In this document: in pieces, positions 657 to 64,000 of the stretch | Numbering within the stretch: the first letter of the stretch is position 1 | Layout: each line of letters opens with the position of its first letter | NCBI GenBank assembly: GCA_946965045.2 | Contig: OX337228.1 | Span: forward strand, 2,294,001 to 2,358,000 | Length of the DNA stretch: 64,000 nucleotides | Reading direction: 5' to 3' | DNA from: Epithemia pelagica | Taxonomy: Eukaryota > Protista > Bacillariophyta | Translations under genes and position numbers: made by a program | The notes under the pieces: model-generated | What the model saw: only the letters and a program-made list of their open reading frames with translations | The model's database searches: none | What the model was told of the DNA's origin: nothing

Positions 657-3554
657 TTAATTTAGCTCTTGAGCAATGTTGCTCGCTTGGTTCGGTTCGC
701 ATCGCGAATTGTTAGCGATGTGTTTCAATTTGGCTTCCAGCGCTACCATGAAAAACTGAATCGCCGTACTGCGCTTCTTCATTACGCACGAGAATAGAGC
801 AACGGCCTCACGAATTTGTTTTTCAGTTCGCGAAAGTTCCAGAATAACGTCACTCACGAGATGGCGGTCATCTTGATGAAAACAAAATAGCAGGTTCTCC
901 TCCCAGTTGTAGAACACCTCACTGAGCGCGTCTAAAGTTGACTTTTCCGACCTTGCCTTCTTGACAAAACAGAGGGCTTGCTCACGATCGGTTTCATGTA
1001 GCATCGAAATATTCACTTCTTTATGTTGGGAGACGGGTACACGGTCTTGAAAGTGGTCAATCATGCCTAACAAATCATTCATACCAGCATTTTCCATGTC
1101 ACTGGATTCAACGAAAAGGTTGTCGAACGACGACGTTAACTCGCTGGTGATGAGTGCTTGCCACAAACACGCTGTTTCCGGCGATAATCTCTCATTCGTA
1201 CGAGATGAAACTTGGATGCGACTGTGGCAACGCAAAACATCGTCATCATCGCTCTGGAAGCCAGCCTCGTGTCTATCCAGGTCGTCGATAAAAGGGCATT
1301 CGATCTTGACTGCAACTTCATCGATCTGGGGGCACTCTTTGGCATAAAGGTCGTTGTCTTCAGACTCATCATGGTCCGACAGCTGAGCGTCTCTAACTTC
1401 TCCATTAACAATTTGCGTTAAAGTTGCCTGAATACCTTGCCTCTTCACTCCAAAGAGTCGTGATTGCGCCTTCTCCACCATGTGGTTCGCTAATGGGTTT
1501 CTCGGTTCAGCATGGTCCAATTTGTCATCGAGTTCTTTAGAATCAGGGAGGAACCACGATTTTTCAACGTTTTCTCCAATTTTCATGAGCCGTTCTCGTT
1601 TTTTCCACATGTCGCGGCGGTGTGCTTTGAGTCGCCGCCGCAAGCTGTCTTCTTCACTGGAATAGCGTTCCACAAGTTTTTCCAACTTTTGTAGTCGGCT
1701 TATCAATGCCTTCTCAATCGCAACATCTGACTGGGACATATCCAAGGGAATCTTCTCTTCGTTTTTAAATCGACCTTGCATACACGGGCAACTCTTACAT
1801 TGTTGGCAAGTCATCGATCGAGGTCTTATCTTTTCGTTCTGTACCCGACTAGTGGACGTCACCTTGCTTCGGTCGGAAATATCTGAGGATTTAGAATCCT
1901 TTCGTCTTTCACCACACGTTTCTTTTTCACACAGAAGAGATTTCTTTCCTGATCCAGCCGTTCTGCCCCTAGCTCGTGATTTTGTTGAATCACTCGATTT
2001 GCTCTTTGGGTTTTCTTTGTTAATTACCGCCTTCGTCTCTGGTCGATCCTGTTGAGGCGGGTGGCTCGCGGCGAAATGACCAGGTGATATCATGTCATCA
2101 CCGGGATCTTTTCCGGACTCGTCGACACCCTGACTTGGCGCACAAGAGAATTGCTGTATTGAGCGAGTAGGGTGGCATGTCCTTTCGTCTCGATCCGCGT
2201 TGTCCCTGGGCGAGTCCTTGATCGCTTCCGGTCGAAGCTGCGACAATGGCAAGGTTTTGGACGGAACCAATGAGGATGCATCATTCTGACTCTCTGCCTG
2301 TCGTCGCGCCATTGCTTCGAGAACAGTTTCCTTCACATGTGATTTCATCTTTTTTGTCAGCCGCACCCCATGATCCGATTCTAGCATTGCGTAGACGTCT
2401 TTCAAGGTGACTTTGGTGGGATCCCTCGGCTCAAGATAGGCCTGTAGGATCTCGGTTAGTTGATTGTTATCGATATGTGACACTGCCCTTTTAACAGTTG
2501 TTTCTTGACCAGTGTTAGGACGTTCGCAATGATTATCCGACGCGGTCTTGTTTGGACTCAAATTTTCGCATTTGACATGCGACTCAACAAGACTTTTGTT
2601 CGCGGCATCCGGTCGTTGTGATATAATGGGATCCTTTGGTGTTTCTTCATGACATTTGGTTATTGATTGTGTGGACTGCGTTCCGTACTGCACACTTTGT
2701 TTTTCCCGTTTAATGGAAGAAAAGATTGGCTTTGACAATAAAAGTTCGTCATCGGATGAATCGTCGGAAAGCAGACTCAGCTCATCCGAAACCTTTCTCG
2801 TATTGGATGACGGAGATGGACTACTCGCCTTGGACTTTTTGTTGACTTGAGTTAAATCAACGTTTGAATGGCCCGTCTGTTGACTTGACGTAATGCTACG
2901 CTTGGATCCTCTGTGGGACAATTTGCTGTTGTTGTCAATACTGAGAAATGCTCGTTCGGCCCTTTCAATTTCGTCGTCAATGTTAAAGGATGGGAGCGGT
3001 GGCATAGTCCGTTTTCGCCGACGTCGGCGATTCTTTTTGTGGCTACTAGAAGTACTGCTGTTGCTTTTCGCCGACGCTTGCAACAGCGTCTCATCTTTGT
3101 CAATCTCCACAATCGGTGACGATGGTTGCGATAACAATGCCGTCGTTTCTCGGATGCAAGTTTCCCTGGTCTTCCATCGGCACGTTGTGCCCGAGTTGTT
3201 GCGTCGTGAGAAGGATCGCTCCTGACCAGCCGACTTTTCCACACAGCGAGAGAGGCTGAATCCTATCATGGAATTGTCGGGACAAAGAGACATTGTATCG
3301 ACCAGGGCTATTAAAAGGTTATCGACTTTGACAAAACTCTTGGAATGAAAAGGCAAATCGCGCCAAAGTCGACAAACTGCGATCAAAAAATGGGCGGAAG
3401 AAAGTGGAACATGGTTAGAAGGCGTGACGCGCCTGTCGGCCCAACAAGAGAGCGTGGTCATCCGTTGGATGGGCCGAATGCCGAGAGGGCAACCACCAAC
3501 ACGTGCACCAAGGAACCGTAATCCGTGGCGTTGGACCTTATCTGTTGTGAACAC
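657..3554 (-). CDS. Large low-complexity nuclear-type protein with a DEK_C-like helical domain; true start uncertain (ATG at 3293 or 3005)
   Basis: 965-aa ORF. Basic NLS-like HKKNRRRRRKR. DEK_C-like segment LTEILQAYLEPRDPTKVTLKDVYAMLESDHGVRLTKKMKSHVKETVLE (~2300-2470). CQQCKSCPC motif and a coiled-coil C-terminus. Confidence 0.7.
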   Translation of the reverse strand: MFTTDKVQRHGLRFLGARVGGCPLGIRPIQRMTTLSCWADRRVTPSNHVPLSSAHFLIAVCRLWRDLPFHSKSFVKVDNLLIALVDTMSLCPDNSMIGFSLSRCVEKSAGQERSFSRRNNSGTTCRWKTRETCIRETTALLSQPSSPIVEIDKDETLLQASAKSNSSTSSSHKKNRRRRRKRTMPPLPSFNIDDEIERAERAFLSIDNNSKLSHRGSKRSITSSQQTGHSNVDLTQVNKKSKASSPSPSSNTRKVSDELSLLSDDSSDDELLLSKPIFSSIKREKQSVQYGTQSTQSITKCHEETPKDPIISQRPDAANKSLVESHVKCENLSPNKTASDNHCERPNTGQETTVKRAVSHIDNNQLTEILQAYLEPRDPTKVTLKDVYAMLESDHGVRLTKKMKSHVKETVLEAMARRQAESQNDASSLVPSKTLPLSQLRPEAIKDSPRDNADRDERTCHPTRSIQQFSCAPSQGVDESGKDPGDDMISPGHFAASHPPQQDRPETKAVINKENPKSKSSDSTKSRARGRTAGSGKKSLLCEKETCGERRKDSKSSDISDRSKVTSTSRVQNEKIRPRSMTCQQCKSCPCMQGRFKNEEKIPLDMSQSDVAIEKALISRLQKLEKLVERYSSEEDSLRRRLKAHRRDMWKKRERLMKIGENVEKSWFLPDSKELDDKLDHAEPRNPLANHMVEKAQSRLFGVKRQGIQATLTQIVNGEVRDAQLSDHDESEDNDLYAKECPQIDEVAVKIECPFIDDLDRHEAGFQSDDDDVLRCHSRIQVSSRTNERLSPETACLWQALITSELTSSFDNLFVESSDMENAGMNDLLGMIDHFQDRVPVSQHKEVNISMLHETDREQALCFVKKARSEKSTLDALSEVFYNWEENLLFCFHQDDRHLVSDVILELSRTEKQIREAVALFSCVMKKRSTAIQFFMVALEAKLKHIANNSRCEPNQASNIAQELN

Positions 3555-46317: not shown

Positions 46318-47356
46318 ATGGATCGGTAAGTTCCTTTTGCTTCCTATTCGTACGGTGGCGGTGGACAAAGTTAATGGGATAGGAGAGGCCTTCCGTATGG
46401 CTTTCTCCTAGCATTCAGTTCATGTTATGGCGTGACTAATTCAAGCCCTTTTGTTCATCATCTTCAGTTATCAAAAGATTGAAAAGCCAGGATCAAATCT
46501 TGGAGAAGGGACCTACGGAGTGGTTTACAAAGCCCGAGATCGTCAGACTGACGATATTGTGGCCTTGAAGCGTATCCGTTTGGAGGTCGAAGATGAGGGT
46601 ATTCCATCAACCGCTTTACGCGAAATTAGCCTTTTGCGCGAGCTATCGCACAGAAATATCGTGGATTTGAGAGATTGCGTGCAGGAAGATGGAAAGCTCT
46701 ACTTGGTTTTTGAATTCCTTGATAAGGACCTAAAGAAATACATGGAATCATGCCACGGGATGCTTTCGCCGGCTCTCGTCAAGTCTTATCTGTTCCAGAT
46801 GTGTCGGGGATTGGCTTTCTGTCACGCCCGTGGAGTGATGCACCGTGACTTGAAACCGCAAAACTTGTTGGTAACTAGGGACGGTCGCCTAAAGTTGGCT
46901 GACTTTGGATTGGCTAGAGCGTTTTGTCCACCGGTTCGCCCTCTGACGCATGAAGTCGTCACTCTTTGGTATCGCCCTCCAGAGATTCTTCTTGGGTCCC
47001 AAACTTATGCTCCTCCCGTCGATGTTTGGGCAATTGGTACCATATTTGTCGAAATGGTTACCAAACGACCTCTCTTCCCTGGTGACTCTGAAATTGACGA
47101 ACTCTACAAGATTTTCCGGCAGCTTGGTACCCCGACAGAGAGCGTTTGGCCTGGTGTTACCCAGCTTCCTGACTGGAATTCGTCATTTCCAACTTGGTAC
47201 AAGTCTCCTTTCGCCCCAAATGTCACTAAAAACCTGGAGCCTTCTGGGCTTGAATTGCTCGAATTGTTTCTAGCTTATGATCCCAAGAATCGCATCAGTG
47301 CAAAAGAATGCTTGAACCACCCATTTTTTGATGATTTGGACAAGGAGAATGTGTAG
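46318..47356 (+). CDS. CDKA2: Cyclin-dependent kinase with PSTALRE helix (diatom CDKA2 type) (2 exons)
   Basis: Micro-exon 46318-46325 (ATG GAT CG), intron 46326-46467, exon 46468-47356. This gives [53 protein letters not shown]. Confidence 0.92.
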
Positions 47357-47721: not shown

Positions 47722-50296
47722 TCAGGATAATCTGCTTCCATGATGTCCCAGATCATGCTGCAAAGGCGGCACGACTGAGTTGCAATGATGCTCACGGTGT
47801 GTTTTCCGAGTTACCCTGGTGAACGCGTTGTGGGAAGGTTCATCATGTTGTTGTCTACTGCAAGCCGATGGGCTGTTCTCCAGATAAAAGTTCAGTAAAC
47901 GTGTAGTCGCTGGATTAGAAGTCGTCACGGGTAAGCCGTCATTTGCTCGACCTGTCCGCATATGTGTCTGAACATCCAGGGCCAACTTTTTACCCAGTTC
48001 CACACCCCATTGGTCAAAGGAGTTAATGTCCCACATGAACCCTTGCACAGCTGTTCGATGCTCGTATATAGCCAACAGTTGCCCGCATGCATAAGCTGTG
48101 AGCTTAGGTAACAGAAGTGATAAACTGCAAAATCAAAATATAATGACATGAGAAAAAAACATTCCGATAGTGCAGGGGTACAAGATATACGTACCTCGGT
48201 CTATTTCCCTTGAATACTTTGTGGGGGATCAACTCTTCGGGAACACCCTCTGCCCTAACCTGTTCCTCGGTTTTGCCTGTTGCTAACGCATCCGGCTGAG
48301 CGAAGAAATTGGCCATCAATTCGTCGTGAGACGACAGATCTTCACCCTCTACACAAAAGTCATGTTGGGACTGGACGAAACCAATGAAGTCACAAGGAAC
48401 AGTTTGACCCATGTGAAGGAGTTGATAAAATGAGTGCTGGCCATTTGTTCCAGCTTCTCCAAAATCAATTTCACCCACAGGGTAATCGACTTCGAGTCCA
48501 TGTTTTGTCATGCATTTGCCATTGGATTCCATGTCCAGCTGCTGGATATGGGCCGGAAGCTTCAGAAGAGCTTCTGCGTACGGTAACGTTGTCCTAGATT
48601 TGTGCTTCATGAAGGACATGTTCCAGACTCCCAACAAGCCCATCAATACAGGTATGTTCTGGTCGAACGGGGCAGTTGCGAAATGCTTGTCAATGGAATT
48701 TGCTCCCTTGAGAAACTTCTCGAAAAGGTCGTAGCCATACAAGAGACTGATAGGAACAGCACCCGCAGCACTGCAGACACTATACCTTCCACCTACAAAG
48801 TCCCAGAAGCGGAAAAATCTTGACTGGGTATCAATGCCAAAGTCTTTGACCTTCTCAATAGATGACTGTGATGCACAAGCAACCATGTGTTTTCGAACAA
48901 CCTCTTTGTCATTGCCCATGAAGTCCCAGAGCCATTGTCGCATGGTCTTGGCATTCAACATCGTTTCAGCTGTTGTAAATGTCTTTGAAACAACGACGAC
49001 CAAAGTTTCCTCAGGATCTAGGTCTGCACAAGTACGTTCAACGTCAACAGGGTCAACATTGGCAAGGAATCTCAAACTATGGCGGAAGGGGGATGATGAG
49101 AAAATTTCACAGCATTGGGCGAATGATCGAGTGAGCAAAACCTACCTGTATCCCAGGGCCGAATTCACTCCTTCTGGTTCTGTCTTCAGGCATTCGTGTA
49201 GAAATTCGGGTCCCAGATATGAACCACCAATTCCAACTGATACAATGTTGCGTAGTCGTTTCCCAGTGTAACCAAGAATCTTTCCCGATCTTACGCCGTC
49301 CGTAAATTGCTTTATTTGATCCAAGACTTCATGTACTTCCGCCACTACATCAGTGTCATCAACGATCACTGTGCCAACTTCCTCTCGTCCAGCGCGTAAA
49401 GCAGTATGAAGGACGGCACGTTCTTCAGTAAAATTGATTTTGTCACCCCTCATCATTGCTTGAATTTGTCCAGCAAGATTTTGTTTCTTCGCGAGTTCAA
49501 ACAGAAATTTCATCGTATCTGCAGTAACTCGTTGTCTCGAATAGTCCAAATACACGCCATCGTAGGTAGCATACATAGTATCTGAGCGTTCTTGGTCTTG
49601 CAGCAAGTCTCGCAAATGCTGTGTCTGTAGATGTTCTGCATGCTTTTGCAAACGCTTCCATTCTGAACATTCTGAGACCAGCTTTGGACGGTTCACGATG
49701 CTGTCCCATATGAGAGCAACTGGGTTCTTTTTCTTAGGTTTGTTGGAAGAATCATTCGTGGCCTCATCCGTGCTTGGTTCACTTTCAATCTCTTGTTTGG
49801 GAATCTCTTTCTTGTCCTCTTCCTCAACCTCTTTCACATCTTCTTGCTTAATGATATTGCTATTTCGTCTTGAAGATACAATACCATGAACTAGATTGAC
49901 TGTCGCATGATGATGGTGCTCCCAAGCGACAGTGGGTAAAAAGCGAGTTGAACGGGCTACGTGGCCACGCACATCGGAATGTATCTTGTGTGAGTCAAAC
50001 TGAAAGTTGCGACGGGCACCTTCGTCTTCCTCCTCCTCGAATTCCTCGAGTGCATGATAAAAGCTGGTAAAGTCTTCAGTTTGCAAAAAGTAGTCTGGGT
50101 AGTCTTCTAGCTCGGCCGAGCGGTCTGGTTCAGTCATAACGTTCCGTGCCCATTCTGTTTCTGGTCGATAGTTCGACTGTAAGGGCGAGTGTTTCACTGG
50201 AATAACAAAGGCTTCCACTATCCTTAACCGACTGTTGTTGAGGACCAAGAGAGAGGAGGAGCAAAACAACAAGCAATAGCAACGAAAAGCATTCAT
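47722..50296 (-). CDS. GPI: Glucose-6-phosphate isomerase with bipartite plastid-type leader (3 exons)
   Basis: Exons 50296-49146, 49076-48195 and 48124-47722. Motifs [77 protein letters not shown]. Leader ..VEA/FVIP. Confidence 0.94.
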
Positions 50297-52188: not shown

Positions 52189-54171
52189 ATGGCGGTGTCA
52201 TTTCCTGGACAATTCGATGATGCAGAGGACGAGGAATCGTTTTGTATCCCACAGGCTACTTTTGTCGGTGCGTTTGACGATGCCGAAGAAGAAGAAGGAG
52301 AAAACGAGAATGATTCGTTTCCGAGATCATCATGTGTATCCAGGAAGGCGATCATGCCAATGAGACCCGAAACTGGCATGGATGCAACCAACCCTCCCAT
52401 TGATTTCGGCAGCGACAAGGACCAGCCAAGAAATGATGAGGGCAAGGGCCCTTCCCCTATGCATGTGTCTCAAACCAAAAGCCACGGTTACAGCAACAAT
52501 CGCACGGAAACTATTCAGAAAAGAGTCTTTTCTTCAGAATCATCCATGCCTGGGAACAAATCGAGTAGGGGCGTCATTGACCTAGCCACGGACTCGGAGG
52601 AGGAGGATGTGGAGGGAGATTTTGAGAATGATTGTCCACAGAAACCCCAGGATCACTTGCGACTGGAAACGATTCGTCAGCAGCTCTTGACACTTCATAT
52701 TCAAAATAGACCATCGAACGTGACTCCAATTGCCCGAAGAAGGAATTTGCACACCAAGAAGGCTAATAGCAGCAGCATCTTTCAAGGTGTTTCTCGCACA
52801 GGATTAGTCTTTCAAAGTACCATTGCATTTTCCAATGTGAAATACCACCTTGGCTATTATGCGAGCGAATGGGATGCAGGAACCATGTATGCTTGGGCAT
52901 ACGGTATTATTCATGGGAAGCAAGAGCGACCAGAACCACTGCAAAAACATCAAGTCAAGGCGACGCTCCAAAACAAACATTGTGCTTCTTCTAGAACCAC
53001 CGCACCCACAGAGAACCCAAATCCAGGTCCGAAGAAGGAATCCGACAACGCAGACTCCGCAACGTCTGCCGAAAAGGAAACACCACTTGGGAACAAAAGT
53101 CACCACCTTCTCCCAAGACCGACTCTTGCGGGCACAATGCCACCTTTGGCACTCTTGTCGCGGAATGGCAGTCCACAGGGGACGACCCTTTTGCCTCGAC
53201 CACTAGAAGTGCCCAAACCCGAGAAAGTAACAACCCCAGCCCATAGCCCTCTTCGACGTCGAAAGCTGCCTCTTCAGCTGGGACCCAGAGAAACAGAAAA
53301 ACTCAGTGCCCAAAGTGTTCGAGAGAAACGAAAACGTCGTAAGCTAACAGCCGTGGAAATGGAGAATTTGAATATTTTGCAATGGGCTGCAGACTCTGTT
53401 TTGAACCCTTCGAGGAAAGACACGCCGAAACAAGACCCCCGCTGCTTCCAAGGGCAAAACGTTAACGTTACCGTCGCAAAGGACTCTCCACAAAACGAAG
53501 AGCAAAACAATGAAAAACAGAATGGTTCCCCCACAACCACGACTGTGTCACTCTCTTCCCAGACATTCCAAGGGGGAAATGAATCAACGATTTTGTCACA
53601 AACTATTTCAGAAGCAACCAAGTCTCGCGCAAAGCTTTCTCCGGCAGCCACAGAGTTGCTCCATTTACAGCATCCCTCCAAGTTACTCATACAAGCGGGT
53701 TTTGTAAAAAGCCGTTTGCTCATTCCTCGGATTGTGACACGCGACCATGGTTTGGCTCGTCCCGTGGTTTTGGGCAAGCACAGGGATAGTCTGACGAACC
53801 GAGATGTCATTTTTGGTCGTGGGAATTTTGCCAACTACCATCCAGGCAATGTCTGGTTCCGATCCTTGACGTCGTGTTATCGTGATATGTATGCGAGCCT
53901 TTCACATGTGGAAAAAAATCAATTGGCGAACAACTTGGTCCAATATATTCGGTTCCTAGGAGGACGGTTTTTGGAGCAACAGGAACACCATGTATTCTTC
54001 GAGGCGGGGGACAAACGTGCCATTACCAAAACCACACAGGTCTTGCGGGATGGCAAAAAACCAGAATCCTTGTTGGTGCAATCCAAACAAGGACTCTCGG
54101 ATGAAGTGAGCAAGGCCAATGTAGTAGACGAGCCTGTTCGGACGGGTCGGCAAAACCTGGATGGAGTCTGA
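52189..54171 (+). CDS. Putative transcription factor: AP2/ERF-like domain plus C-terminal DUF6824-like domain
   Basis: AP2-like SSIFQGVSRTGLVFQSTIAFSNVKYHLGYYASEWDAGTMYAWA (~52770-52910). DUF6824-like DVIFGRGNFANYHPGNVWFRSL..GGRFL..AITKTTQVLRD (~53800-54050). NLS-like EKRKRRK. Confidence 0.78.
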   Translation: MAVSFPGQFDDAEDEESFCIPQATFVGAFDDAEEEEGENENDSFPRSSCVSRKAIMPMRPETGMDATNPPIDFGSDKDQPRNDEGKGPSPMHVSQTKSHGYSNNRTETIQKRVFSSESSMPGNKSSRGVIDLATDSEEEDVEGDFENDCPQKPQDHLRLETIRQQLLTLHIQNRPSNVTPIARRRNLHTKKANSSSIFQGVSRTGLVFQSTIAFSNVKYHLGYYASEWDAGTMYAWAYGIIHGKQERPEPLQKHQVKATLQNKHCASSRTTAPTENPNPGPKKESDNADSATSAEKETPLGNKSHHLLPRPTLAGTMPPLALLSRNGSPQGTTLLPRPLEVPKPEKVTTPAHSPLRRRKLPLQLGPRETEKLSAQSVREKRKRRKLTAVEMENLNILQWAADSVLNPSRKDTPKQDPRCFQGQNVNVTVAKDSPQNEEQNNEKQNGSPTTTTVSLSSQTFQGGNESTILSQTISEATKSRAKLSPAATELLHLQHPSKLLIQAGFVKSRLLIPRIVTRDHGLARPVVLGKHRDSLTNRDVIFGRGNFANYHPGNVWFRSLTSCYRDMYASLSHVEKNQLANNLVQYIRFLGGRFLEQQEHHVFFEAGDKRAITKTTQVLRDGKKPESLLVQSKQGLSDEVSKANVVDEPVRTGRQNLDGV

Positions 54172-54490: not shown

Positions 54491-54752
54491 TGGCGAGCTG
54501 TTTTACTTGACGGCATAGATTGCTCTTGGTATTGCGTTGACCGTTGATCGGATCATTCGCTTGTTTCTTGCACCAATTGTTGTGTCCTACGTCGTAGCAT
54601 ACTGTCTGTGGCATCAGTGGGTGTGAGGGTGTGAGATTGTCGTTGGGGGTCGACGATATCCAAGGAGGCCGGTGGTGTGACTCCAAACTTGGTATTCGGT
54701 TTGGTTGATTCGTACGTAGCTCTGCGCCAAACCACGCTACAGTGGACGCACC

Positions 54753-57700
54753 ATGCCTGGATCGCAATCGAAGGATGACGGTGCTCCGGTGGGAAATTCA
54801 GGAGAGCAGTCCAACAGCCGAAAACCGACAGCGGCAGACTCGACAACAAGTTCGACCAACGGCCCACCACCGGTGGGCTCTTTGGGCAATTTACGAGCAC
54901 CAACCGAATTGGGTCAGTATGAGAGAAAGGAAAGCACTACAAGTTGGACATCTCCGGCCTTGCGCCATGTGAAGGCTCATCCTGGAATCGTTCGTACGCG
55001 ACGAAGAGCTCTCATGGCCGTTCAGCGGATCAGTACACCCGCTGCCATTCAGGAAGAACGAGAAATTTATCAATACATGTCGTCGGGGACAAGCAATGAG
55101 GGTGGAGGTAAAATGAATAGCAGTAGTACGGATCCTACGAAAACTGAAGACGGTTGGAACAAGTCGAGAATGACGTATTGTACCTCGTTTGCCTATCGAG
55201 GAATGGAAATTTTGGTTGGGACGGCTCATCAAAAATGTTTTCTGTTGTGTCCTCGAACCAAACTGGTCTTGCAAACGCTGGATCCACCACCTCCTTCTAC
55301 GTTGTCTTCACCGACGCAACAACACCCAAGCCCCATTATTTCTCTTCGAACTCATGAGGCCACCGGTCAGATTGTCCTGGTGACAGCGGATGGAACCCTT
55401 GTTTCCTATGCGCCGAAACCCAGCGATCCTCTTCAAGTCAATTTTGGACGCTTCCATTGGTACACGGGTCCGACCGTGAATTGTGCCCGTATTTTTTACA
55501 ACGACAGTCAATCGAGGGCTCGTTTTACCCCCGCACGAAGTAAACACGGTTTGGAAGTGTCAGTGGCCAATGATTTTAAAATTCTCTTGGTGCATCGAGA
55601 TCAATTGGCCGTCTTGGATGCCAAGCCTGAATTGCGAGAAGCGGAAATGCTCTGGACTACCTGTTTGCCTTCGCCCATTGTCACGGCACAGTTGTCGGGG
55701 GATGCCCAATCCATTGCGGTGGTTCTCAAATCCAATACACTAGATATAGACGCGGCCGATGCCGATGGCGTCCACACGCTGGAACGAGACTGGGAAGATG
55801 GCGGTAGTAGCGGTCGTGACAAAAGCAACAATGTGTCGGCACATTCGTCAACGTCGTCGTCCGTGAACGCCTCCAACTCTCTTCATCGCAGTAGTACGGA
55901 GGAGACCAAGGATAGAGAAACGGATCCCTCGGCGTCGGTTGGTGTCATCTACAAACCTGGTCCATTTTTGGTCCATTCGGCTCCTGTAGTTCGGTTGGCC
56001 TTTCGAGGTAAAGGCCGGGAGACCAGCAACCCACCGCCATCAGATGGACCCAATGAAGTCGACGAAATCCCGGGTAATGATTTACTCTTGACTGTTTCCA
56101 AAGACAACACCGCACAAATCTTTGGCCAATCCAACTGGAAACCTTTGACCGAGTGGACCATGACTCCCAAAACTCGGGTTGACTGGATCACTGGAACGGC
56201 TGCCATGACATTGGGTGATTTGGAAGGAAGATCTATATCATCCCAGCGGAAAAGAGGTTCGACAAGTGCGAGTAGTAGTCGTCGTCCCAGTTCCAACGAT
56301 TTGGTGGGTGAAACAAACGAGGTACCAGATACGACCAATCGTCATTCGCATTTTGCAACCATACCGACTCATACAACGCCCGTATCGAAAGCAGGCGCAT
56401 GGATTTGCGAGATCAATTGCCAAGGACAGTATCCGTCTATGCGTCTGAGTCGGCTGACCTATTTGAAACGAGGTGCCGATGATCTCAGTCCCACCCTGTT
56501 TGAAAGTTTCACGGGGCACCTACCTGCCAACGCAATCTACGAAGACCTCTTGTTGGGAAAAGAAGAGGATCCATCCACGTTGTCAGTGGAAGGACTATGG
56601 CCTATTTGGAACCCGTTTGTTGCAGATCCCACGCCAGCATCTGACAATGCGCCTAGTCATGAAACTCTTCGTGGATCAGCAATGGCCTTTTTGGGACTGT
56701 CTTCTGCCCATCATGCAGTAGGTCCAGGTGGAACATTCTTTGGAGATCCCCAGTTGATAGGGACACAATGTCCACCTACAGAGTTACGATTGACCATGTC
56801 ACATCCTGTCTCTGGAAGTTTGACAGTGATTGAAGTGCCCTTGTATGGAGACAAGTCTTTGACAAGCTTGGAACTCGGACGTCCGATGCACTCTGTCTGG
56901 GCGTTGAATGAAATACATACGCCTGAGGGCACTGCAACAAGCAGCCATGACATTTTGGATATGGAATCCACCAAACATGGAGACGGACGACTGGTTGCGA
57001 AATTACACCCGAACAATGTCATCCGCGTTACCTGGAGACAGCCAGGCACTGGAACAATGCTACCATCGGCCTGGCATCCTAAGGACATTGCCATGCCCAA
57101 TGTGGCCGATCTTCTTTCCAACACAAAGCGAATGAATGATGAAAGTTTGATGCCTCCTCCATTGGCCCTTCGGCCATTCAAGCTACCACAAGAGTTTGAA
57201 GACGCAAATGACCCGTTTGTCATGTTAATATGGTGGCCTGATTCTGGAAATGTCGGCTCTCCTCCCACGCTTTTGGCACTCACAAAAAGTGGGTGTGCAG
57301 TTGCCTTTGAGGTTGTTACTCCGCTTGTGTCGACGGTTGCAGGATCCGATCCGAGTTCGGCATCGCAGTCATCTAAAGATACCTCGGCAAGCACGTCGTC
57401 GACGAGTGATACTGTGTACGAGCAAGGTTTCTCCGAATACGAAGTTTACATTGTACCAGATCCAGACCTCGGGCTGGGCTTGCGACTGGAGTCGTTGGAT
57501 GATGGACAACCAGCTATTGCAGGCTCGTTCAAGAAGAACCCCAAAACTGGTGGAATCCTTCCGGCTGAAAAGACCGGAATGATCACGCTAGGAGATGAGC
57601 TTTTAACTGCGAACGGAGTTCTTCTAGAGGACAAGCCATTTGATGAGATTATTGGGTGTGTCCGTGAGCTTGGGGCCAGTAGTGGCCCAGACAATCCAAT

Positions 57701-60700
57701 GAGACTTCGTTTCCGTCGGAAAGGCCCCTCACTCAGGTCCCGCTCTAATAGTGGCACTTCAGACGGCTCGAACCGTCGAACGGTGGAGCAAATGTTTCGT
57801 CTTAGCAGTCAGGAACTTGCGCAGCGGAGACCTTTCCAGAATGGATCAGTCCAGAGAAGTTCCGGAGCATCCAGGACTTCGACACGAAATGCGGGAGGTT
57901 GCTCAATCGTGTGCTCTTTTCGTCGACCAATACCTGGTGCGGCGCAAGTTATGAACTCAGGTGATTTTCGCCGAAACATATTACTACTTGAAGCATCAAC
58001 TGGTGGCACCGATGACGATGATTGCTTGGTGGCTCTTATGTGTTGCGCCGATGGACGGCACGTTGTTTTTTCAGTTTTATCACTTCAAGGGACTGATCAG
58101 TACAATTCTTCTTCATCAAAATCGCGTCATCTTCACACTTTTACCAGTGAAGACGATATTGATTCGATCAATTTTGTGGACAGGCAGCTTTCGTGTTATT
58201 TCATCCTGGTTCTAGAAAGAAGCGCCCGGGTTCGGTTACTGGTGGCAAATCTGGACTTCGTCTCAACGAATCATTCTATACGTTCGTTCGATCTTTCCCA
58301 ACTTTGCAGCAAGACTCCGTCAGACCTTGTTCTGAAAGCTCATTCCGTGGAGCTCATCGCCACGTTCGAAAAAGACTCTTCCAATCCTGAACCACTAAAG
58401 ATTTGGTCGTCCAAACTGAATCCAGGATGTGATCTAGGCGGACTTGAAAGCTCTGAAGCTGGAGAAGGAGGACACAATTTCAATTATGTTCATTCGGTCA
58501 TCAGAATCGATGTGGAACCACAGTCCAATGGGACGTCAGAAAGTAATGTTGTCGATTTTCGTTTCGTAAGTTCCGGATACTTGAATCCATTTCCCTGGTT
58601 CCTAGTGTACGGCCTTCACGGAACGACGCTTCATCATCGTCCCGGTGGGTCAGATGAATGGATTCCCTTAGCCGTGATTAACTACACCTCGGTGCCCGGC
58701 TCTCTGTCACTGAATATTGATCATGGTCAAAGTCCAACCCTTTTTGGCAGGCATGTGCACCTGATGGACGCATACCCCCATCTGGATGCTGCATTCCGGT
58801 CCGCGTTACCATCATCGGAAGGAGACTCATTCTTACGTTCAGACTGGCACCCTGAATCCCTGCTCGCGAGCGTATGTTTGAATGGGGAAGGGGCCGACGC
58901 CGCCGTAACTAGCAAGCTCCCAGGTTTTTTTACGTGGTTATCAACCGAAATCGCAAGCATTGAAGATCATCACGTCGATTCTCCTATTCTGTGTGCTCCA
59001 CTGCTGGCTTTGGAGGAGAACAGAAAGGGCCCTGTACAAAATCATTCATCACAGGATATCATGCAAGCCATCAAGACGAAGGATGATGAGCCGGAAGAGA
59101 TCGTGAGAATGAAGGAGTTACAGACACTCCTGATGGAAGCGGCGAAAGACTCCACGCGACAGTTATATATTGAATCTCAGTCGAAAAAGCAAAACCAATC
59201 TACACAGAGTGCGTTGCCACCGATGCTTCGAGCAAGTAGCTCTGACGATCTTTCGTTGTTGTGGGCGATTGGAGAGCTTGTCGTTAGCCCACCTGACTTA
59301 AAATATCTCGATCACTCTGGCCAACTCTTTCTGTTCTCTTCATGTTTGTTCAATATTTTGAAAACACTTGATGAATCCAAGAAAGATACGAAACCGGCAA
59401 AGTTTGTCGCCCCTACGGTGCTTCGAAAGGAAGCATCTAGTCGCACAAAGATATCAGATAGTCCAGAAACGGACACACAAGTCTCATCAGGTGCTTGTCT
59501 TGCTGCTCTGATGAGTAACTCTCAGGAAAGGCTTGTCGAATGGGCGAGAAAGACATACGTGAAGATGGATTGGCACCAACTACGCAGTATTCGAATGCCC
59601 TTCTGGCTGCGGTCAGACAAGAGCCTTGCGCGTATTAGTGAGGAAATAGGACAAAGTATCTTTCGTGAAAAGCGAGATGTCATGGAATGTGCATTGTTCT
59701 TTATCATTGCACGGAAGTTAAAAACACTTCGAAATCTTGCTGCTACTGATCGTTCAGATAGCGGCCAAAAGTTTTTCAACTTTCTCACTAGCCATGATTT
59801 CTCCAGCGATCGAGGACGACGTGCAGCCGAGAAGAATGCATTCAGTCTCCTTAGAAAATGCCGCTACCGGGTGGCTTCAGCATTTTTCTTGCTCGCTGAA
59901 CCTCCTGCACTTCAATCGTCGTTGGAAACGATATTAACCAAGCTGCATGATTTTGATCTTGCATTCATGGTTGCGAGACTAATGGAAAGTAAGGAATTGG
60001 ACTCTACTAATGGTCTGCGTCTTGGTTTTAGCGGGAGTGGATTTGGCGGCGGAGGTGGCTACGCTGGGGCGGGGACTGAGGGGCCAACTTCCGCAAGCCC
60101 AGACTCAGTCAAGTACGATCAATGGTCTCCAACACTTGGAACGGGAACCCGAAAGCTGCTCGTGGAGAGGCTATTCAAGTTGTCATCAAATGACAATGCC
60201 TTGAGCGCCCTCCAATTACTATGGCTTAAGAAACCAGAAGAAGCTTCTTGGTGGCTGCCAGGCTTCATTATTTCCTCACATGCTTCAGGAACTGGGTTCA
60301 GAGTGGTGGATGATTTAAATTCGAGACTGTCGGAGAAGCTGAAAGAACGCGATGACCTTCTGAAAACTGGAGCTATTGCAAAGGCAAATGCTATCATCGA
60401 CTTTGTTTCAATTCCGTTCCTTCAGCGAATAATGAATGTCAGTTTGAGATCAAGATACGCTGGTTGTCTTCTGGTATGTGATCAGTTGATTTCTCGAGGC
60501 GTTGAAGTGCCTTCTTTGTGGAAAGTGATGGTAGATCTTAAGGAGTCTGGAGACAAGCCATCAAATGAGAAAGAAACAAGTCCAGGCCTCCAGAAACCGA
60601 CAGACCATGTGTCGTCGTCGATCTTTGATGGCTTCGATGTTCCGCAAGTTGCAGTTACCAAACCACCTAAACTTGATGTTCAATCTTCTGTATTTGACGA

Positions 60701-63700
60701 CTTCGACGTGGCACCAAAGCAAGCAGAAGTAAAGTCGTCTATTTTCGATGGTTTCGACGTTCCAAGACCCGCGCCCAGAACCGCTCCTCAAGCTGAAATG
60801 CAATCCTCTATATTTGACGGTTTCGACGTCCCAAAACGCGTGCCACAAGCCTTCACTGGCGAAATGCAATCTTCTATCTTTGACGACTTCGCTGTTCCGA
60901 ATGCTCCCAGTGCATCATCAAAATCGATGTCGAGTTTGGCATCTCCACATATGAATGGTGAAATCAATAGAGAATCTGATGATACGCCGCCAGCATGTGA
61001 TATCGACATCTCAATCCCGGCGAACCCAACCCCTGAAATATGGAACTTGTGGAAAGACCGTGTTGTCCTTCTCAGTATTACAAGACGTCTGATCCGAGAG
61101 GTAGCAAGCATTGTATCAAGTTTCCATGGAGACCCTCTTCAGGTCTCGATTGAAGATTTTTATCTTCAAAATCGCACCTTCCTCCCCGCGACGGCATCTG
61201 AAGTCTTGCAGATACCATGTGATAGTCATAGAATTCTGCACCGTACCAAGGAATCGCTGATGCACCTTACATCTGTATCTGGAGTGAACAAGACAACCCT
61301 CGTTAGCTCTGCAGTCAACCTTCTCGGCGTTCAAAGCAATCACTACAGAACGCTTTTGTCCGTGGTGCTGTATTCGGTAATTGATAGATTTGATCTTGCT
61401 GAGTCCATGATAATGTCCGCAGCGGGCTCACTTGTCCGTCAAAGTGGAGCTTTTGCTCTGGCCTTTGATGATAGCTGTCAACGGAGACAAACCAGATTTC
61501 AAGCATCCTCGATTCAAGCCCGTCGACTTTCGGCCCGAGTGAGCTGGCAGCTAGAAATGTGCCTTTGGTTGAATAGGAGTGGTTTAATTCCCTTGTCGGG
61601 ATTGGCCTTCAAGGAAGCAACTGTGTCCGTGAGATTGGGTGTCTTAAGCGCCTCGTGGAATCGATCACCGGAAGCAATTGAGGCGCTTCTACGTTGTGAG
61701 CCAGATGCAATTATTGATGAGGACGAAGGCATGCATCTCTGGAGCTGTCTGAAACACATAGGTGAGACCTCGTTTGACAAGTCAAAGAAGGCTAGCAGTG
61801 GGGGTTGGGAGTTTTTTGTCGATTGTAGAAGGTCAGAGGCCACGAAAATTCTTCGAGAGAGTCCGACTGGTAGCTTCATCATTCGACCACACCCGAACGA
61901 CCATGGTGTTTTTACGTTAAGTTTCAAGACCAATTTGGTGCCTGGCGACGAATCTGGAATACTTGATGTTGACACACAAGATCGCTCCCTTGAAGGTGCA
62001 GATGGTGATGCGCAAGGGCGTCCTCCACGACAAAGCTCGAAATCTGTGAAGAAAGATGATATTGTTCAACATGCAATAATACGTCTGTCGGATTCTGGTT
62101 TCCGTTGTGGATCTTTTGGTCCATTTACAAGCCTGTTGGATCTTCTCGAATCTGTTTCCGAGTCATTGCCATTTGAACTTCGATTTGATCTGCCTCCTAT
62201 GAACCGTGCCATCCGTGAGGAGGGATCCCAGCCATCCCCGAATGCTCTTCTTTTCCGAAGACTTACTCTTAGCCAGACGGATAGTATGGATCCTGTTCGT
62301 CGAGACAATGACAATGAAGGCAATGCCGGTATTTCAAATGACAGGGTTACCCATGAGATGGAACCCTCAGAACGTAATCGATGCTTTGGATCTTTCTTAG
62401 ATCTTCTCCTCCTTTCAAAAATACGGAGACAGCTGACAGGGGTTGCCATCGTTGGCTACAATGACAATGCAGCCGATGCCGAAAACCGATCAGATCGAAC
62501 TCGGAACGACCAATCTCACTATTCCACCACTCAGGTAGCTTCATGGATTGTTGGACCTCTTCTCGGCTGGTGTCGGTCGTTGGAAGTGAGAGCAGTGTAT
62601 GAGCTCGCTCCGAGTGTGGCTTCCTTGTGGAAAATGCTGGGAGAGAAATCGAAAGCCATGATGGACGTATTAGAGCAGTCGATTGAGATCACTCTTGGTC
62701 CACATGCTGGAAACTCGTCAGATAGCGGAGACTACATCCTGCGCTCTATGATACAGCGGAACTCAGGCGTAGATTTCAGCACTTTGAGACTTGTTGATGG
62801 AGGAGATTGTTCCATGGTTGTCCTCTTCAGTAAGAACGAAGCAATTCAATGGCTGGTGTCTAGCGGTACCGAATTATCTGAAGCAGATGCTTCACATCGC
62901 CTTGCCAGAATGGAAAGAGAGCGAGTCATAGAACCCATCGATTTTTCACGACTGCCTTTGAAACAACGCCCTGCTGACTTGGATGAAGGTGTCCGATACC
63001 GCTTTGTTGACCCATGGGAAGTCGAAGCTGTGAACTCCCGTGAGGGCGAGACGTCGAGTGCATCCTTGGGTCGACAACATTTCTTGGGATTCAGCTTAGG
63101 AAGAATAGCTTTGGCCTGTGAGTCTGATTTCAGGATGCTTGGCGGTATTCCGCTTCTAGAGTTATGGATGAGTACCAGCGGAGGAGTCGTCCTTTCCAGA
63201 GCTCTCGCGGCGGTGCATCCTCCCTGGGAACGATCCTCTGGAGGTGATCTGCAGGTTCGAGGTGGTGTTTTGGCTGAACCGGAGCCATTCGCAAACAGTA
63301 TTCGTCAGCATTTATACAGAAACGCTTTGTTTCAACGTCTTGAGTTACCTCAACGCTTTCTGGCGTTGGTACAGGTGGAACTCTTGGATTTGAAAAATCT
63401 TACCTCACCAGGGGGTGCATTGGCGATGTCAGTGTATTCTTTGCTTCGTCTGAAACGAAGAGGCTCAAGCGGCGTTCTTTCTAACAAAACTAGAACTCTG
63501 GACACAGCATCTACGAGTCCCGTTCGTCTTGGAAAGCCAACCGGAGTTGGTCCGAACGCCCCGGCATCTTGGGGAAGCGTCGTCCGGTTCAGATATCCTT
63601 TGCCTGATGAAACTTCTGTTGATGGCACTAGTTTCGATTCTGATCGGGAGGCCCTCTTCAAAGGTCCTCCGTCTGTTTTACAGATAACTGTGTACGAAAA

Positions 63701-64000
63701 GAAGCTTCTTGTCGATCATGCGCTTGGCACAGCTGATGTCGACATGGATGGTCTCTTCGCTGGGGGCCAAGTAGAAGAGTGGGTACCGCTGAGATCGGAA
63801 AAACATGGAATACATTGGTTTACTCGAATCAGGTTAACGCTTCGATTTGAACTCATGTGCCTAGCATCCCGGGAATTGAAGGACTTGTCGTCCACTGCCC
63901 CTAGTGTGGGACTCCAGCGAATTGAAAACCTCTGCCAAGCGGGTGGTACTGCTGCACATGAAGACCAAAGACGCAGCATGAGTTCTCCTGACCTACTGCA
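54753..64000 (+). CDS. Giant DMXL/Rav1 (rabconnectin-3alpha/RAVE)-like protein with PDZ, Rav1p_C, SH2, DEP and C2 modules; 3' end outside window
   Basis: ATG at 54753. No ORF in this frame is listed in the track, consistent with an open frame to the window edge, and spot translations were stop-free. PDZ GLGLRLE..GDELLTANGV (~57430-57720); Rav1p_C MPFWLR..AAEKNAFSLLRKCRYRVASAFFLLA (~59560-59900); SH2 (~61800-62190); DEP-like (~62740-63015); C2 (~63350-63850). Confidence 0.85.
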   Translation, partial: MPGSQSKDDGAPVGNSGEQSNSRKPTAADSTTSSTNGPPPVGSLGNLRAPTELGQYERKESTTSWTSPALRHVKAHPGIVRTRRRALMAVQRISTPAAIQEEREIYQYMSSGTSNEGGGKMNSSSTDPTKTEDGWNKSRMTYCTSFAYRGMEILVGTAHQKCFLLCPRTKLVLQTLDPPPPSTLSSPTQQHPSPIISLRTHEATGQIVLVTADGTLVSYAPKPSDPLQVNFGRFHWYTGPTVNCARIFYNDSQSRARFTPARSKHGLEVSVANDFKILLVHRDQLAVLDAKPELREAEMLWTTCLPSPIVTAQLSGDAQSIAVVLKSNTLDIDAADADGVHTLERDWEDGGSSGRDKSNNVSAHSSTSSSVNASNSLHRSSTEETKDRETDPSASVGVIYKPGPFLVHSAPVVRLAFRGKGRETSNPPPSDGPNEVDEIPGNDLLLTVSKDNTAQIFGQSNWKPLTEWTMTPKTRVDWITGTAAMTLGDLEGRSISSQRKRGSTSASSSRRPSSNDLVGETNEVPDTTNRHSHFATIPTHTTPVSKAGAWICEINCQGQYPSMRLSRLTYLKRGADDLSPTLFESFTGHLPANAIYEDLLLGKEEDPSTLSVEGLWPIWNPFVADPTPASDNAPSHETLRGSAMAFLGLSSAHHAVGPGGTFFGDPQLIGTQCPPTELRLTMSHPVSGSLTVIEVPLYGDKSLTSLELGRPMHSVWALNEIHTPEGTATSSHDILDMESTKHGDGRLVAKLHPNNVIRVTWRQPGTGTMLPSAWHPKDIAMPNVADLLSNTKRMNDESLMPPPLALRPFKLPQEFEDANDPFVMLIWWPDSGNVGSPPTLLALTKSGCAVAFEVVTPLVSTVAGSDPSSASQSSKDTSASTSSTSDTVYEQGFSEYEVYIVPDPDLGLGLRLESLDDGQPAIAGSFKKNPKTGGILPAEKTGMITLGDELLTANGVLLEDKPFDEIIGCVRELGASSGPDNPMRLRFRRKGPSLRSRSNSGTSDGSNRRTVEQMFRLSSQELAQRRPFQNGSVQRSSGASRTSTRNAGGCSIVCSFRRPIPGAAQVMNSGDFRRNILLLEASTGGTDDDDCLVALMCCADGRHVVFSVLSLQGTDQYNSSSSKSRHLHTFTSEDDIDSINFVDRQLSCYFILVLERSARVRLLVANLDFVSTNHSIRSFDLSQLCSKTPSDLVLKAHSVELIATFEKDSSNPEPLKIWSSKLNPGCDLGGLESSEAGEGGHNFNYVHSVIRIDVEPQSNGTSESNVVDFRFVSSGYLNPFPWFLVYGLHGTTLHHRPGGSDEWIPLAVINYTSVPGSLSLNIDHGQSPTLFGRHVHLMDAYPHLDAAFRSALPSSEGDSFLRSDWHPESLLASVCLNGEGADAAVTSKLPGFFTWLSTEIASIEDHHVDSPILCAPLLALEENRKGPVQNHSSQDIMQAIKTKDDEPEEIVRMKELQTLLMEAAKDSTRQLYIESQSKKQNQSTQSALPPMLRASSSDDLSLLWAIGELVVSPPDLKYLDHSGQLFLFSSCLFNILKTLDESKKDTKPAKFVAPTVLRKEASSRTKISDSPETDTQVSSGACLAALMSNSQERLVEWARKTYVKMDWHQLRSIRMPFWLRSDKSLARISEEIGQSIFREKRDVMECALFFIIARKLKTLRNLAATDRSDSGQKFFNFLTSHDFSSDRGRRAAEKNAFSLLRKCRYRVASAFFLLAEPPALQSSLETILTKLHDFDLAFMVARLMESKELDSTNGLRLGFSGSGFGGGGGYAGAGTEGPTSASPDSVKYDQWSPTLGTGTRKLLVERLFKLSSNDNALSALQLLWLKKPEEASWWLPGFIISSHASGTGFRVVDDLNSRLSEKLKERDDLLKTGAIAKANAIIDFVSIPFLQRIMNVSLRSRYAGCLLVCDQLISRGVEVPSLWKVMVDLKESGDKPSNEKETSPGLQKPTDHVSSSIFDGFDVPQVAVTKPPKLDVQSSVFDDFDVAPKQAEVKSSIFDGFDVPRPAPRTAPQAEMQSSIFDGFDVPKRVPQAFTGEMQSSIFDDFAVPNAPSASSKSMSSLASPHMNGEINRESDDTPPACDIDISIPANPTPEIWNLWKDRVVLLSITRRLIREVASIVSSFHGDPLQVSIEDFYLQNRTFLPATASEVLQIPCDSHRILHRTKESLMHLTSVSGVNKTTLVSSAVNLLGVQSNHYRTLLSVVLYSVIDRFDLAESMIMSAAGSLVRQSGAFALAFDDSCQRRQTRFQASSIQARRLSARVSWQLEMCLWLNRSGLIPLSGLAFKEATVSVRLGVLSASWNRSPEAIEALLRCEPDAIIDEDEGMHLWSCLKHIGETSFDKSKKASSGGWEFFVDCRRSEATKILRESPTGSFIIRPHPNDHGVFTLSFKTNLVPGDESGILDVDTQDRSLEGADGDAQGRPPRQSSKSVKKDDIVQHAIIRLSDSGFRCGSFGPFTSLLDLLESVSESLPFELRFDLPPMNRAIREEGSQPSPNALLFRRLTLSQTDSMDPVRRDNDNEGNAGISNDRVTHEMEPSERNRCFGSFLDLLLLSKIRRQLTGVAIVGYNDNAADAENRSDRTRNDQSHYSTTQVASWIVGPLLGWCRSLEVRAVYELAPSVASLWKMLGEKSKAMMDVLEQSIEITLGPHAGNSSDSGDYILRSMIQRNSGVDFSTLRLVDGGDCSMVVLFSKNEAIQWLVSSGTELSEADASHRLARMERERVIEPIDFSRLPLKQRPADLDEGVRYRFVDPWEVEAVNSREGETSSASLGRQHFLGFSLGRIALACESDFRMLGGIPLLELWMSTSGGVVLSRALAAVHPPWERSSGGDLQVRGGVLAEPEPFANSIRQHLYRNALFQRLELPQRFLALVQVELLDLKNLTSPGGALAMSVYSLLRLKRRGSSGVLSNKTRTLDTASTSPVRLGKPTGVGPNAPASWGSVVRFRYPLPDETSVDGTSFDSDREALFKGPPSVLQITVYEKKLLVDHALGTADVDMDGLFAGGQVEEWVPLRSEKHGIHWFTRIRLTLRFELMCLASRELKDLSSTAPSVGLQRIENLCQAGGTAAHEDQRRSMSSPDLL
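60612..60899 (+). repeat. Five-copy peptide motif SS[IV]FD[GD]F[DA]V[PA] within the giant ORF
   Basis: Translated copies: SSIFDGFDVP, SSVFDDFDVA, SSIFDGFDVP, SSIFDGFDVP, SSIFDDFAVP, with 9-14-aa spacers. Confidence 0.9.

Follow-up and report, generated by a model that had tools for sequence, protein, structure and literature searches.

The right-hand end of the 64,000-nucleotide window analysed here (from the diatom Epithemia pelagica, assembly GCA_946965045.2, contig OX337228.1, positions 2,294,001 to 2,358,000) is occupied by a giant gene whose product joins the conserved core of the Rav1/DMXL family, scaffolds for the assembly of the vacuolar-type ATPase (V-ATPase), to PDZ, SH2, DEP-like and C2 modules. 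We consider it likely that this protein represents the ochrophyte orthologue of Rav1/DMXL (rabconnectin-3 alpha), present in a single copy, i.e. a scaffold for the re-attachment of V1 to Vo that carries additional modules. All these elements had been named in an initial annotation made from the nucleotide sequence alone, and all of them are present, the DEP-like domain having the weakest support.

The gene is encoded on the plus strand in a frame that stays free of stop codons from position 54720 to position 63998, the end of the last full codon in the window. Such a run of 3,093 codons has a chance probability of about 1e-64, and the earlier description of an intronless frame of more than 3,080 codons is thus correct. 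The first ATG is at position 54753 and the stop codon lies 23 nucleotides past the end of the window, with the last eight codons and the stop at window-equivalent positions 64001-64025. The resulting product of 3,090 amino acids is not interrupted by any in-frame stop (residue i starts at nucleotide 54753+3(i-1)). The frame is missing from the list of open reading frames (ORFs) of the window only because the program that made the list skips ORFs running off the source. P0001, a database protein of equal length, deviates from it at just two residues, F2034S and T2290I (nucleotides 60852-60854 and 61620-61622), and probably represents another haplotype or allele, or another assembly, of the same gene, to judge from the two sequences.

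The assignment to the Rav1/DMXL family rests primarily on the Rav1p_C block, which the initial annotation had rightly called clear: residues 1516-1747 match the Pfam family (E 1.4e-34; 120 bits, the cut-off being 27), and a six-frame search of the 60.5-Mb genome found this gene to be the sole Rav1p_C match. Residues 1605-1746 can be aligned to residues 927-1067 of yeast Rav1 (PDB 9cop_x, E 2e-16), a segment that spans the three yeast helices contacting V1 subunit A (yeast residues 1012-1050). According to the structure of the yeast complex, these three helices (1012-1024, 1028-1037 and 1041-1050) are the only ones of Rav1 that touch V1, and they fall in the region most like rabconnectin-3 alpha (bioRxiv 10.1101/2024.07.18.604153). 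Three of the four hydrophobic contact residues, F1020, L1023 and F1035, are kept in the diatom protein. The region preceding the PDZ domain is presumed to be the beta-propeller part, as its language-model features in the protein atlas are nearest to beta-propeller/WD40 clusters (0.90-0.93), with recognition being low.

Modules added to the Rav1 core

The SH2 domain is supported by sequence as well as by fold. When the segment is scanned alone, it scores 30.8 bits with Pfam SH2 (model positions 2-43; cut-off 21), and a Pfam match is found in every one of 46 sampled orthologues. Strands and helices follow the canonical order in the structure predicted with AlphaFold2 (AF2), i.e. a central sheet flanked by alpha-A and alpha-B, with the predicted local distance difference test score (pLDDT) exceeding 90 in the ordered parts, and SH2 domains account for all of the best 50 Foldseek matches of this model in the PDB (E down to 3e-6). 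The domain is interrupted by a disordered and variable insert of 30 residues between strands C and D (residues 2399-2428). The pocket residues Arg2360 (alpha-A), Arg2378 (beta-B5) and His2440 (beta-D4) are invariant in the 46 orthologues and align with the SHP2 pocket motifs FLARP and VTHVMIR. The conserved arginine of the initial annotation, which corresponds to Arg2378, and the SH2 assignment itself are therefore upheld by both Pfam and fold. At the genome level, Pfam SH2 and a profile built from the diatom SH2 sequences each match this one gene only, and the profile of the Spt6-type SH2 family matches one other locus. As far as these sequence searches go, the sole SH2 domain detected in the genome besides that of Spt6 is that of the putative V-ATPase assembly factor.

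The C2 domain near the C-terminus is recognized chiefly by its fold. A VIA-align search with the predicted structure gave a Z score of 12.5 for 120 aligned residues, at a root-mean-square deviation of 2.7 A, in keeping with the eight-stranded C2 beta-sandwich; Z was at least 8 for 74 chains, every row listed being a C2 domain. Foldseek likewise returned C2 domains (E 9e-7). The Pfam C2 match of the window copy is below threshold (13.8 versus 22 bits), and 26 of 44 orthologues match the model weakly; the C2 domain claimed previously is nevertheless confirmed by its fold. Inspection by eye suggests that most of the usual calcium ligands, the aspartates in loops 1 and 3, may have been replaced. 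In the AF2 model of residues 2655-3045 (pLDDT 80.9, predicted template modelling score 0.81), the C2 domain packs as one unit with the DEP-like domain and with the mostly helical block that separates the two.

The identity of the DEP-like domain is probable. A profile of 76 sequences matches both DEP domains of DEPTOR (E 6.6e-4), the atlas language-model features of the segment have a top score of 0.91 with all ten best named clusters being DEP, and the AF2 topology a1-b1b2-a2-a3-b3b4 (a helix, a hairpin, two helices and a two-stranded wing) is consistent with this assignment. This copy has no match to Pfam DEP, nor was it retrieved in a genome search at E <= 10, which gave five other loci, and only four of 44 orthologues match the model weakly (best E 0.011); in fold searches of the PDB and the atlas with the model of the DEP, helical block and C2, the lists of matches are dominated by C2 domains. 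The DEP-like domain proposed in the initial annotation thus stands on profile, language-model features and topology, while it is backed neither by Pfam nor by fold searches.

The PDZ domain, which precedes the Rav1 core, is best seen in the orthologues, 45 of 46 of which match Pfam PDZ at E <= 0.01 (best 3.3e-8); PDZ_6 is matched in 34 of the 46. The copy from the window is itself below the Pfam cut-off (13.2 versus 23.2 bits), but is 44-73% identical to the PDZ domains of the orthologues that do match, and in a search of the PDB it matched a PDZ domain of GRIP1 (E 0.01). The GLGL loop, mentioned already in the initial annotation, is located at approximately residues 905-909 and is invariant, as are G23 and G25 of the PDZ alignment.

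Besides the helical blocks before the SH2 and between DEP and C2, neither of which matches a known family, two conserved elements lie outside the folded modules. The low-complexity linker behind the Rav1 core contains acidic-aromatic SSIFDxFD motifs spaced by approximately 17-23 residues, with at least three copies in 103 of 115 orthologues (median five, maximum nine). We looked for a tandem repeat in the underlying DNA and found none, i.e. the repeat exists at the protein level only. The composition of the motifs recalls adaptor-ear-binding motifs, with a different order of residues. The extreme C-terminus reads ...Y[LF]ESMVY-COOH in most diatom orthologues: among 113 of them, the final Y occurs in 66, M at -2 in 72 and V at -1 in 71; this ending is absent from the non-diatom homologues. 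The SMVY tail resembles a class-II PDZ ligand in a protein that has a PDZ domain of its own. A prediction of the complex between the PDZ domain and the last 40 residues scored 0.00 in a run without controls, which speaks neither for nor against binding. Coordinates of all features are given in table 1.

Table 1. Features of the Rav1/DMXL homologue and of its neighbourhood. Positions are those of the window, or window-equivalent where they lie beyond its end.
Feature	Residues	Position	Strand	Basis
Rav1/DMXL homologue, single intronless coding sequence		54753..64000, stop at window-equivalent 64023-64025	+	stop-free frame
N-terminal region, presumed beta-propeller part	145-880	55185..57392	+	atlas features
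PDZ with GLGL carboxylate-binding loop	896-991	57438..57725	+	Pfam in orthologues
Rav1p_C/alpha-solenoid core	1516-1747	59298..59993	+	Pfam E 1.4e-34
Five SS[IV]FD[GD]F[DA] acidic-aromatic motifs in low-complexity linker	1955-2053	60615..60911	+	motif positions
Helical block preceding SH2	2250-2340	61500..61772	+	mean identity 0.47; no Pfam match
SH2	2350-2482	61800..62198	+	Pfam, AF2, Foldseek, SHP2 alignment
DEP-like winged helix	2659-2755	62727..63017	+	profile, atlas features, AF2 topology
Mostly helical conserved block between DEP and C2	2760-2866	63030..63350	+	AF2 packing, mean identity 0.58; no family match
C2 beta-sandwich	2867-3038	63351..63866	+	fold searches
Conserved tail ...QYLESMVY-COOH	3070-3090	63960..64000, ends window-equivalent 64022	+	orthologue counts
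Protein-kinase domain in 306-codon open frame, ~7.7 kb upstream of the Rav1 gene		46493-47065	+	PF07714, 114 bits
ORF with C-terminal 125 residues matching the start of phosphoglucose isomerase (PGI)		49142-50296	-	PGI E 4.6e-39
660-aa ORF directly upstream, C-terminal DUF6824		52189-54171	+	E 5e-21
Two-exon methyltransferase gene (Methyltransf_32), ~370 nt past the stop		64398-66150, window-equivalent (L003 1398-3150)		domain match

Conservation, distribution and integrity of the gene

The full layout is found in more than 110 diatom orthologues of approximately 2,800-3,900 amino acids, from pennate as well as centric species, including representatives of Epithemia (84% identical over the C-terminal third), Nitzschia, Cylindrotheca, Pseudo-nitzschia, Chaetoceros, Thalassiosira, Skeletonema and Cyclotella. 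Mean identity, computed against 114 orthologues, is 0.37 for the whole protein and 0.63 for the Rav1 core. The corresponding values are 0.61 for the PDZ, 0.56 for the DEP-like domain, 0.58 for the helical block behind it and 0.68 for the C2, and in the SH2 they amount to 0.75 and 0.76 in the two ordered halves and drop to 0.12 in the insert. With module identities of 0.56-0.76 against 0.37 overall, the added modules are no less constrained than the Rav1 core, and by this alignment-based measure they are under stronger constraint than the remainder of the protein.

Some of the modules are also found outside diatoms. An exhaustive profile search of 1.84 billion representatives with the unit of DEP, helical block and C2 retrieved only 198 proteins at E <= 0.001, and the non-diatom carriers were scored with profiles built from the diatom alignments. 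A homologue from Pelagophyceae sp. CCMP2097 has the Rav1 core, a weak SH2, DEP and C2, and that of Chrysophaeum taylorii the Rav1 core, SH2 and C2; SH2 and C2 were detected in a protein from Epipyxis, and DEP and C2 in one from Chrysoparadoxa australica. The homologue from the oomycete Plasmopara halstedii has the Rav1 core and C2 only. Two further homologues of approximately 2,300 amino acids have the PDZ domain as well, and the pelagophyte and chrysophyte proteins retain the SH2 signature GxF[ILV][ILV]RP[HQ]. Hence, as judged from these sequences, the layout is at least ochrophyte-wide and older than diatoms, and the C-terminal C2 may extend across stramenopiles. The characterization of the gene as part of a diatom system, put forward in the initial annotation, does not survive this sampling, since homologues from pelagophytes, a chrysophyte and Chrysoparadoxa share extra modules and the oomycete one shares the C2.

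It could be argued that the architecture is an artefact, be it of two adjoining genes read through or of a fusion introduced by assembly or annotation, and two observations might be taken to this effect. The first is an 11.7-kb contig from run X4 that runs from the Rav1/DMXL gene into the methyltransferase gene downstream. It is probably derived from RNA, because the 94-nucleotide GT..AG intron of the latter gene (window-equivalent 64745-64838) has been spliced out from it; no joint is present within the compared part of the Rav1/DMXL ORF. As this contig also extends into the next gene, a single transcript cannot be proven from the contigs, which further include three short ones (95-99% identity) from a metatranscriptome of another study. 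The other observation concerns a metagenomic relative (L005 and L006, 3507-13639), in which the gene is called as three ORFs of 2,042, 88 and 1,212 amino acids. These are collinear, however, and are separated by only three nucleotides (a single stop codon) and by approximately 95 nucleotides; an intron, read-through or an error could each account for the split. The last of the three had appeared in our searches as a standalone SH2-DEP-C2 protein (cluster P0156), a candidate that we rejected as a split gene model, given its collinear position behind the 2,042-residue ORF with Rav1p_C. Against an artefact stand the 3,093 codons without a stop, the independent DNA contigs identical to the stretch, and the same layout repeated in over 110 orthologues. 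These come from independent genomes and metagenomes and, in one case, from a transcriptome: an MMETSP protein from Chaetoceros (P0081, 3,205 amino acids) that holds every module. An artefactual origin thus appears exceedingly improbable.

As for the other genes in the vicinity, the ORF matching phosphoglucose isomerase probably belongs to a larger gene as one of its exons. We found no functional link of the Rav1/DMXL gene to the adjoining DUF6824 and methyltransferase genes.

Possible function of the modular scaffold

If the protein is indeed a V-ATPase assembly scaffold, its Rav1 core would, by analogy with yeast, still bind V1 and promote V1-Vo assembly. The DEP-C2 unit, possibly together with the PDZ domain, could place the scaffold on particular membranes or on the tails of membrane proteins, the SH2 domain would make its recruitment or activity hinge on phosphorylation of a partner, and the repeated acidic-aromatic motifs might recruit a multivalent partner. 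Together, the modules would let the cell choose where and when its organelles acidify. In yeast and animals, comparable control is exerted through separate subunits and cues, namely Rav2/ROGDI, Skp1, WDR7, glucose and loss of the proton gradient.

Several observations weigh against such a scenario, or at least against parts of it. The residues corresponding to L1016, T1013, D1043 and K1050 of yeast Rav1 (one hydrophobic and three proposed hydrogen-bonding residues) differ in the diatom protein, which makes four of the seven named V1-A contacts. The presumed N-terminal propellers have no match to Pfam WD40 and no profile match among PDB sequences. A six-frame search of the genome gave no match for Rav2/ROGDI (PF10259), although the search was a weak one, the controls having been silent too. 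Dedicated tyrosine kinases are not established in the genome, where PF07714 is not a specific marker (it also matches bacterial kinases and so supports no conclusion), and phosphatases of the protein tyrosine phosphatase (PTP) type are represented by just two weak matches.

The changed contact residues and the undetected Rav2/ROGDI homologue would both be compatible with a Rav1-derived core that has taken on a different role, i.e. that of a general endomembrane or trafficking scaffold with V-ATPase assembly no longer its main job; repeated acidic-aromatic motifs, PDZ, DEP and C2 are, moreover, typical of trafficking adaptors. We regard this as improbable, considering that the V1-A-binding segment belongs to the best conserved parts of the protein and that the genome has no second Rav1 gene that could take care of pump assembly. 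The single Rav1 gene also bears on the proposal, made in the initial annotation, of a diatom-specific device that ties the acidification of the silica deposition vesicle (SDV) to phosphotyrosine and lipid signals. The premise of this proposal has support in the literature, as V-ATPase has been reported to acidify the diatom SDV and has been implicated in diatom endosomes too (PMC7972479); furthermore, the gene is kept in all sampled diatom groups and its ...SMVY-COOH tail is specific to diatoms. Nevertheless, the sole Rav1 gene of the genome should serve every V-ATPase compartment, endosomes included, and with Rav1 homologues bearing SH2, DEP and/or C2 in pelagophytes, a chrysophyte and Chrysoparadoxa, and C2 in an oomycete, the layout predates diatoms and a silica-specific reading loses its basis. 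We therefore find the SDV device quite improbable.

A separate question is what the SH2 domain recognizes, for the V-ATPase assembly scaffold that we favour could equally carry an SH2 that does not read phosphotyrosine and binds phosphoserine/threonine or an unphosphorylated ligand instead, or that has a structural or intramolecular role. There are precedents for this: the SH2 of Spt6 keeps the invariant arginine and yet binds the Ser-phosphorylated C-terminal domain in organisms without tyrosine kinases (PMC3507883), and the top Foldseek match of the diatom domain is the tensin-2 SH2 (2l6k), solved as recognizing a non-phosphorylated peptide. The search for dedicated tyrosine kinases, which demonstrated none in the genome, points the same way. 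The invariance of the beta-B5 arginine, the beta-D4 histidine and the alpha-A arginine, the similarity of the surrounding motifs to those of the phosphotyrosine-binding SHP2 SH2 domains, and the two PTP-type phosphatase matches argue in the opposite direction, and overall we see a ligand other than phosphotyrosine as a serious possibility, if somewhat short of an even chance. If the SH2 does read phosphotyrosine, its association with Rav1, seen in other ochrophyte algae as well, would point to a phosphotyrosine circuit that is both minimal and ancient and lies outside animals and amoebozoans, wired directly to organelle acidification and with DEP-C2 and PDZ addressing membranes. In our opinion, such a circuit is rather unlikely.

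Comparison with known V-ATPase assembly factors and related domains

The architecture has apparently not been described before, as we found no account of a Rav1/DMXL protein with SH2, PDZ, DEP or C2 in the literature searched. The names of the orthologues in databases are automatic ones, such as ‘PDZ domain-containing protein’ or ‘RAVE complex protein Rav1 C-terminal domain-containing protein’. Control of V-ATPase assembly is an active question, as illustrated by the structure of yeast RAVE published in 2024 and the metazoan DMXL-WDR7-ROGDI complex reported in 2025. Regulation there depends on separate subunits, whereas here ecologically dominant algae have the reader and the targeting domains in the scaffold itself. 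The protein offers a direct handle on the control of acidification in diatom compartments, including the silica vesicle, iron-uptake endosomes and vacuoles. With essentially no SH2 proteins besides this one in the lineage, it is moreover a clean case for testing what an SH2 domain does there, and as such bears on the origin of phosphotyrosine signalling. The availability of transformable diatoms makes these ideas testable.

The protein shares with yeast Rav1, the RAVE subunit (PDB 9cop), the Rav1p_C alpha-solenoid, the V1-A helix segment and a large N-terminal region before the solenoid. It differs in having approximately 1,350 residues after the solenoid and a PDZ domain before it. Yeast Rav1 itself, with 1,357 amino acids, consists of two beta-propellers, an alpha-solenoid and a disordered tail, without PDZ, SH2, DEP or C2, and so conforms to the propeller-plus-solenoid layout that the initial annotation had ascribed to the known members of the family (bioRxiv 10.1101/2024.07.18.604153). 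Giant size combined with a Rav1-family scaffold is a feature that the diatom protein has in common with DMXL1 and DMXL2. In DMXL proteins, WD40 repeats flank Rav1p_C on both sides, and their partners are WDR7 and ROGDI; to our knowledge, no SH2, PDZ, DEP or C2 domain is present in them. In three reports, DMXL1/DMXL2 (rabconnectin-3 alpha) are described as a Rav1-family scaffold of approximately 3,000 amino acids for V-ATPase assembly that is regulated by signals (PMC12527914, PMC12246789, PMC8264551). A closer counterpart in terms of domain composition is the Rav1/DMX protein of the oomycete Plasmopara halstedii (XP_024578909), which combines a Rav1 core with a C2 at the C-terminus that is recognized by the diatom C2 profile and scores above the Pfam cut-off (30.5 bits); PDZ, SH2 and DEP were not detected in it with the diatom profiles at E 1e-3.

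The individual modules can be compared with better characterized domains, too. Both DEP domains of DEPTOR are alignable to the diatom domain over the alpha2-alpha3-beta3 core; the latter is, by contrast, very divergent and fails Pfam; its beta1-beta2 hairpin is longer, its wing contains an insert, and it packs on the helical block and the C2. We know of no classical tyrosine-kinase signalling in the diatom lineage. The diatom SH2 has the same fold as those of SHP2 and tensin-2, and its FIIRP and VQHAIIR are similar to the SHP2 pocket motifs FLARP and VTHVMIR, respectively. What sets it apart from these domains is its location in a predicted V-ATPase assembly factor, along with the disordered stretch of 30 residues that separates strands C and D.

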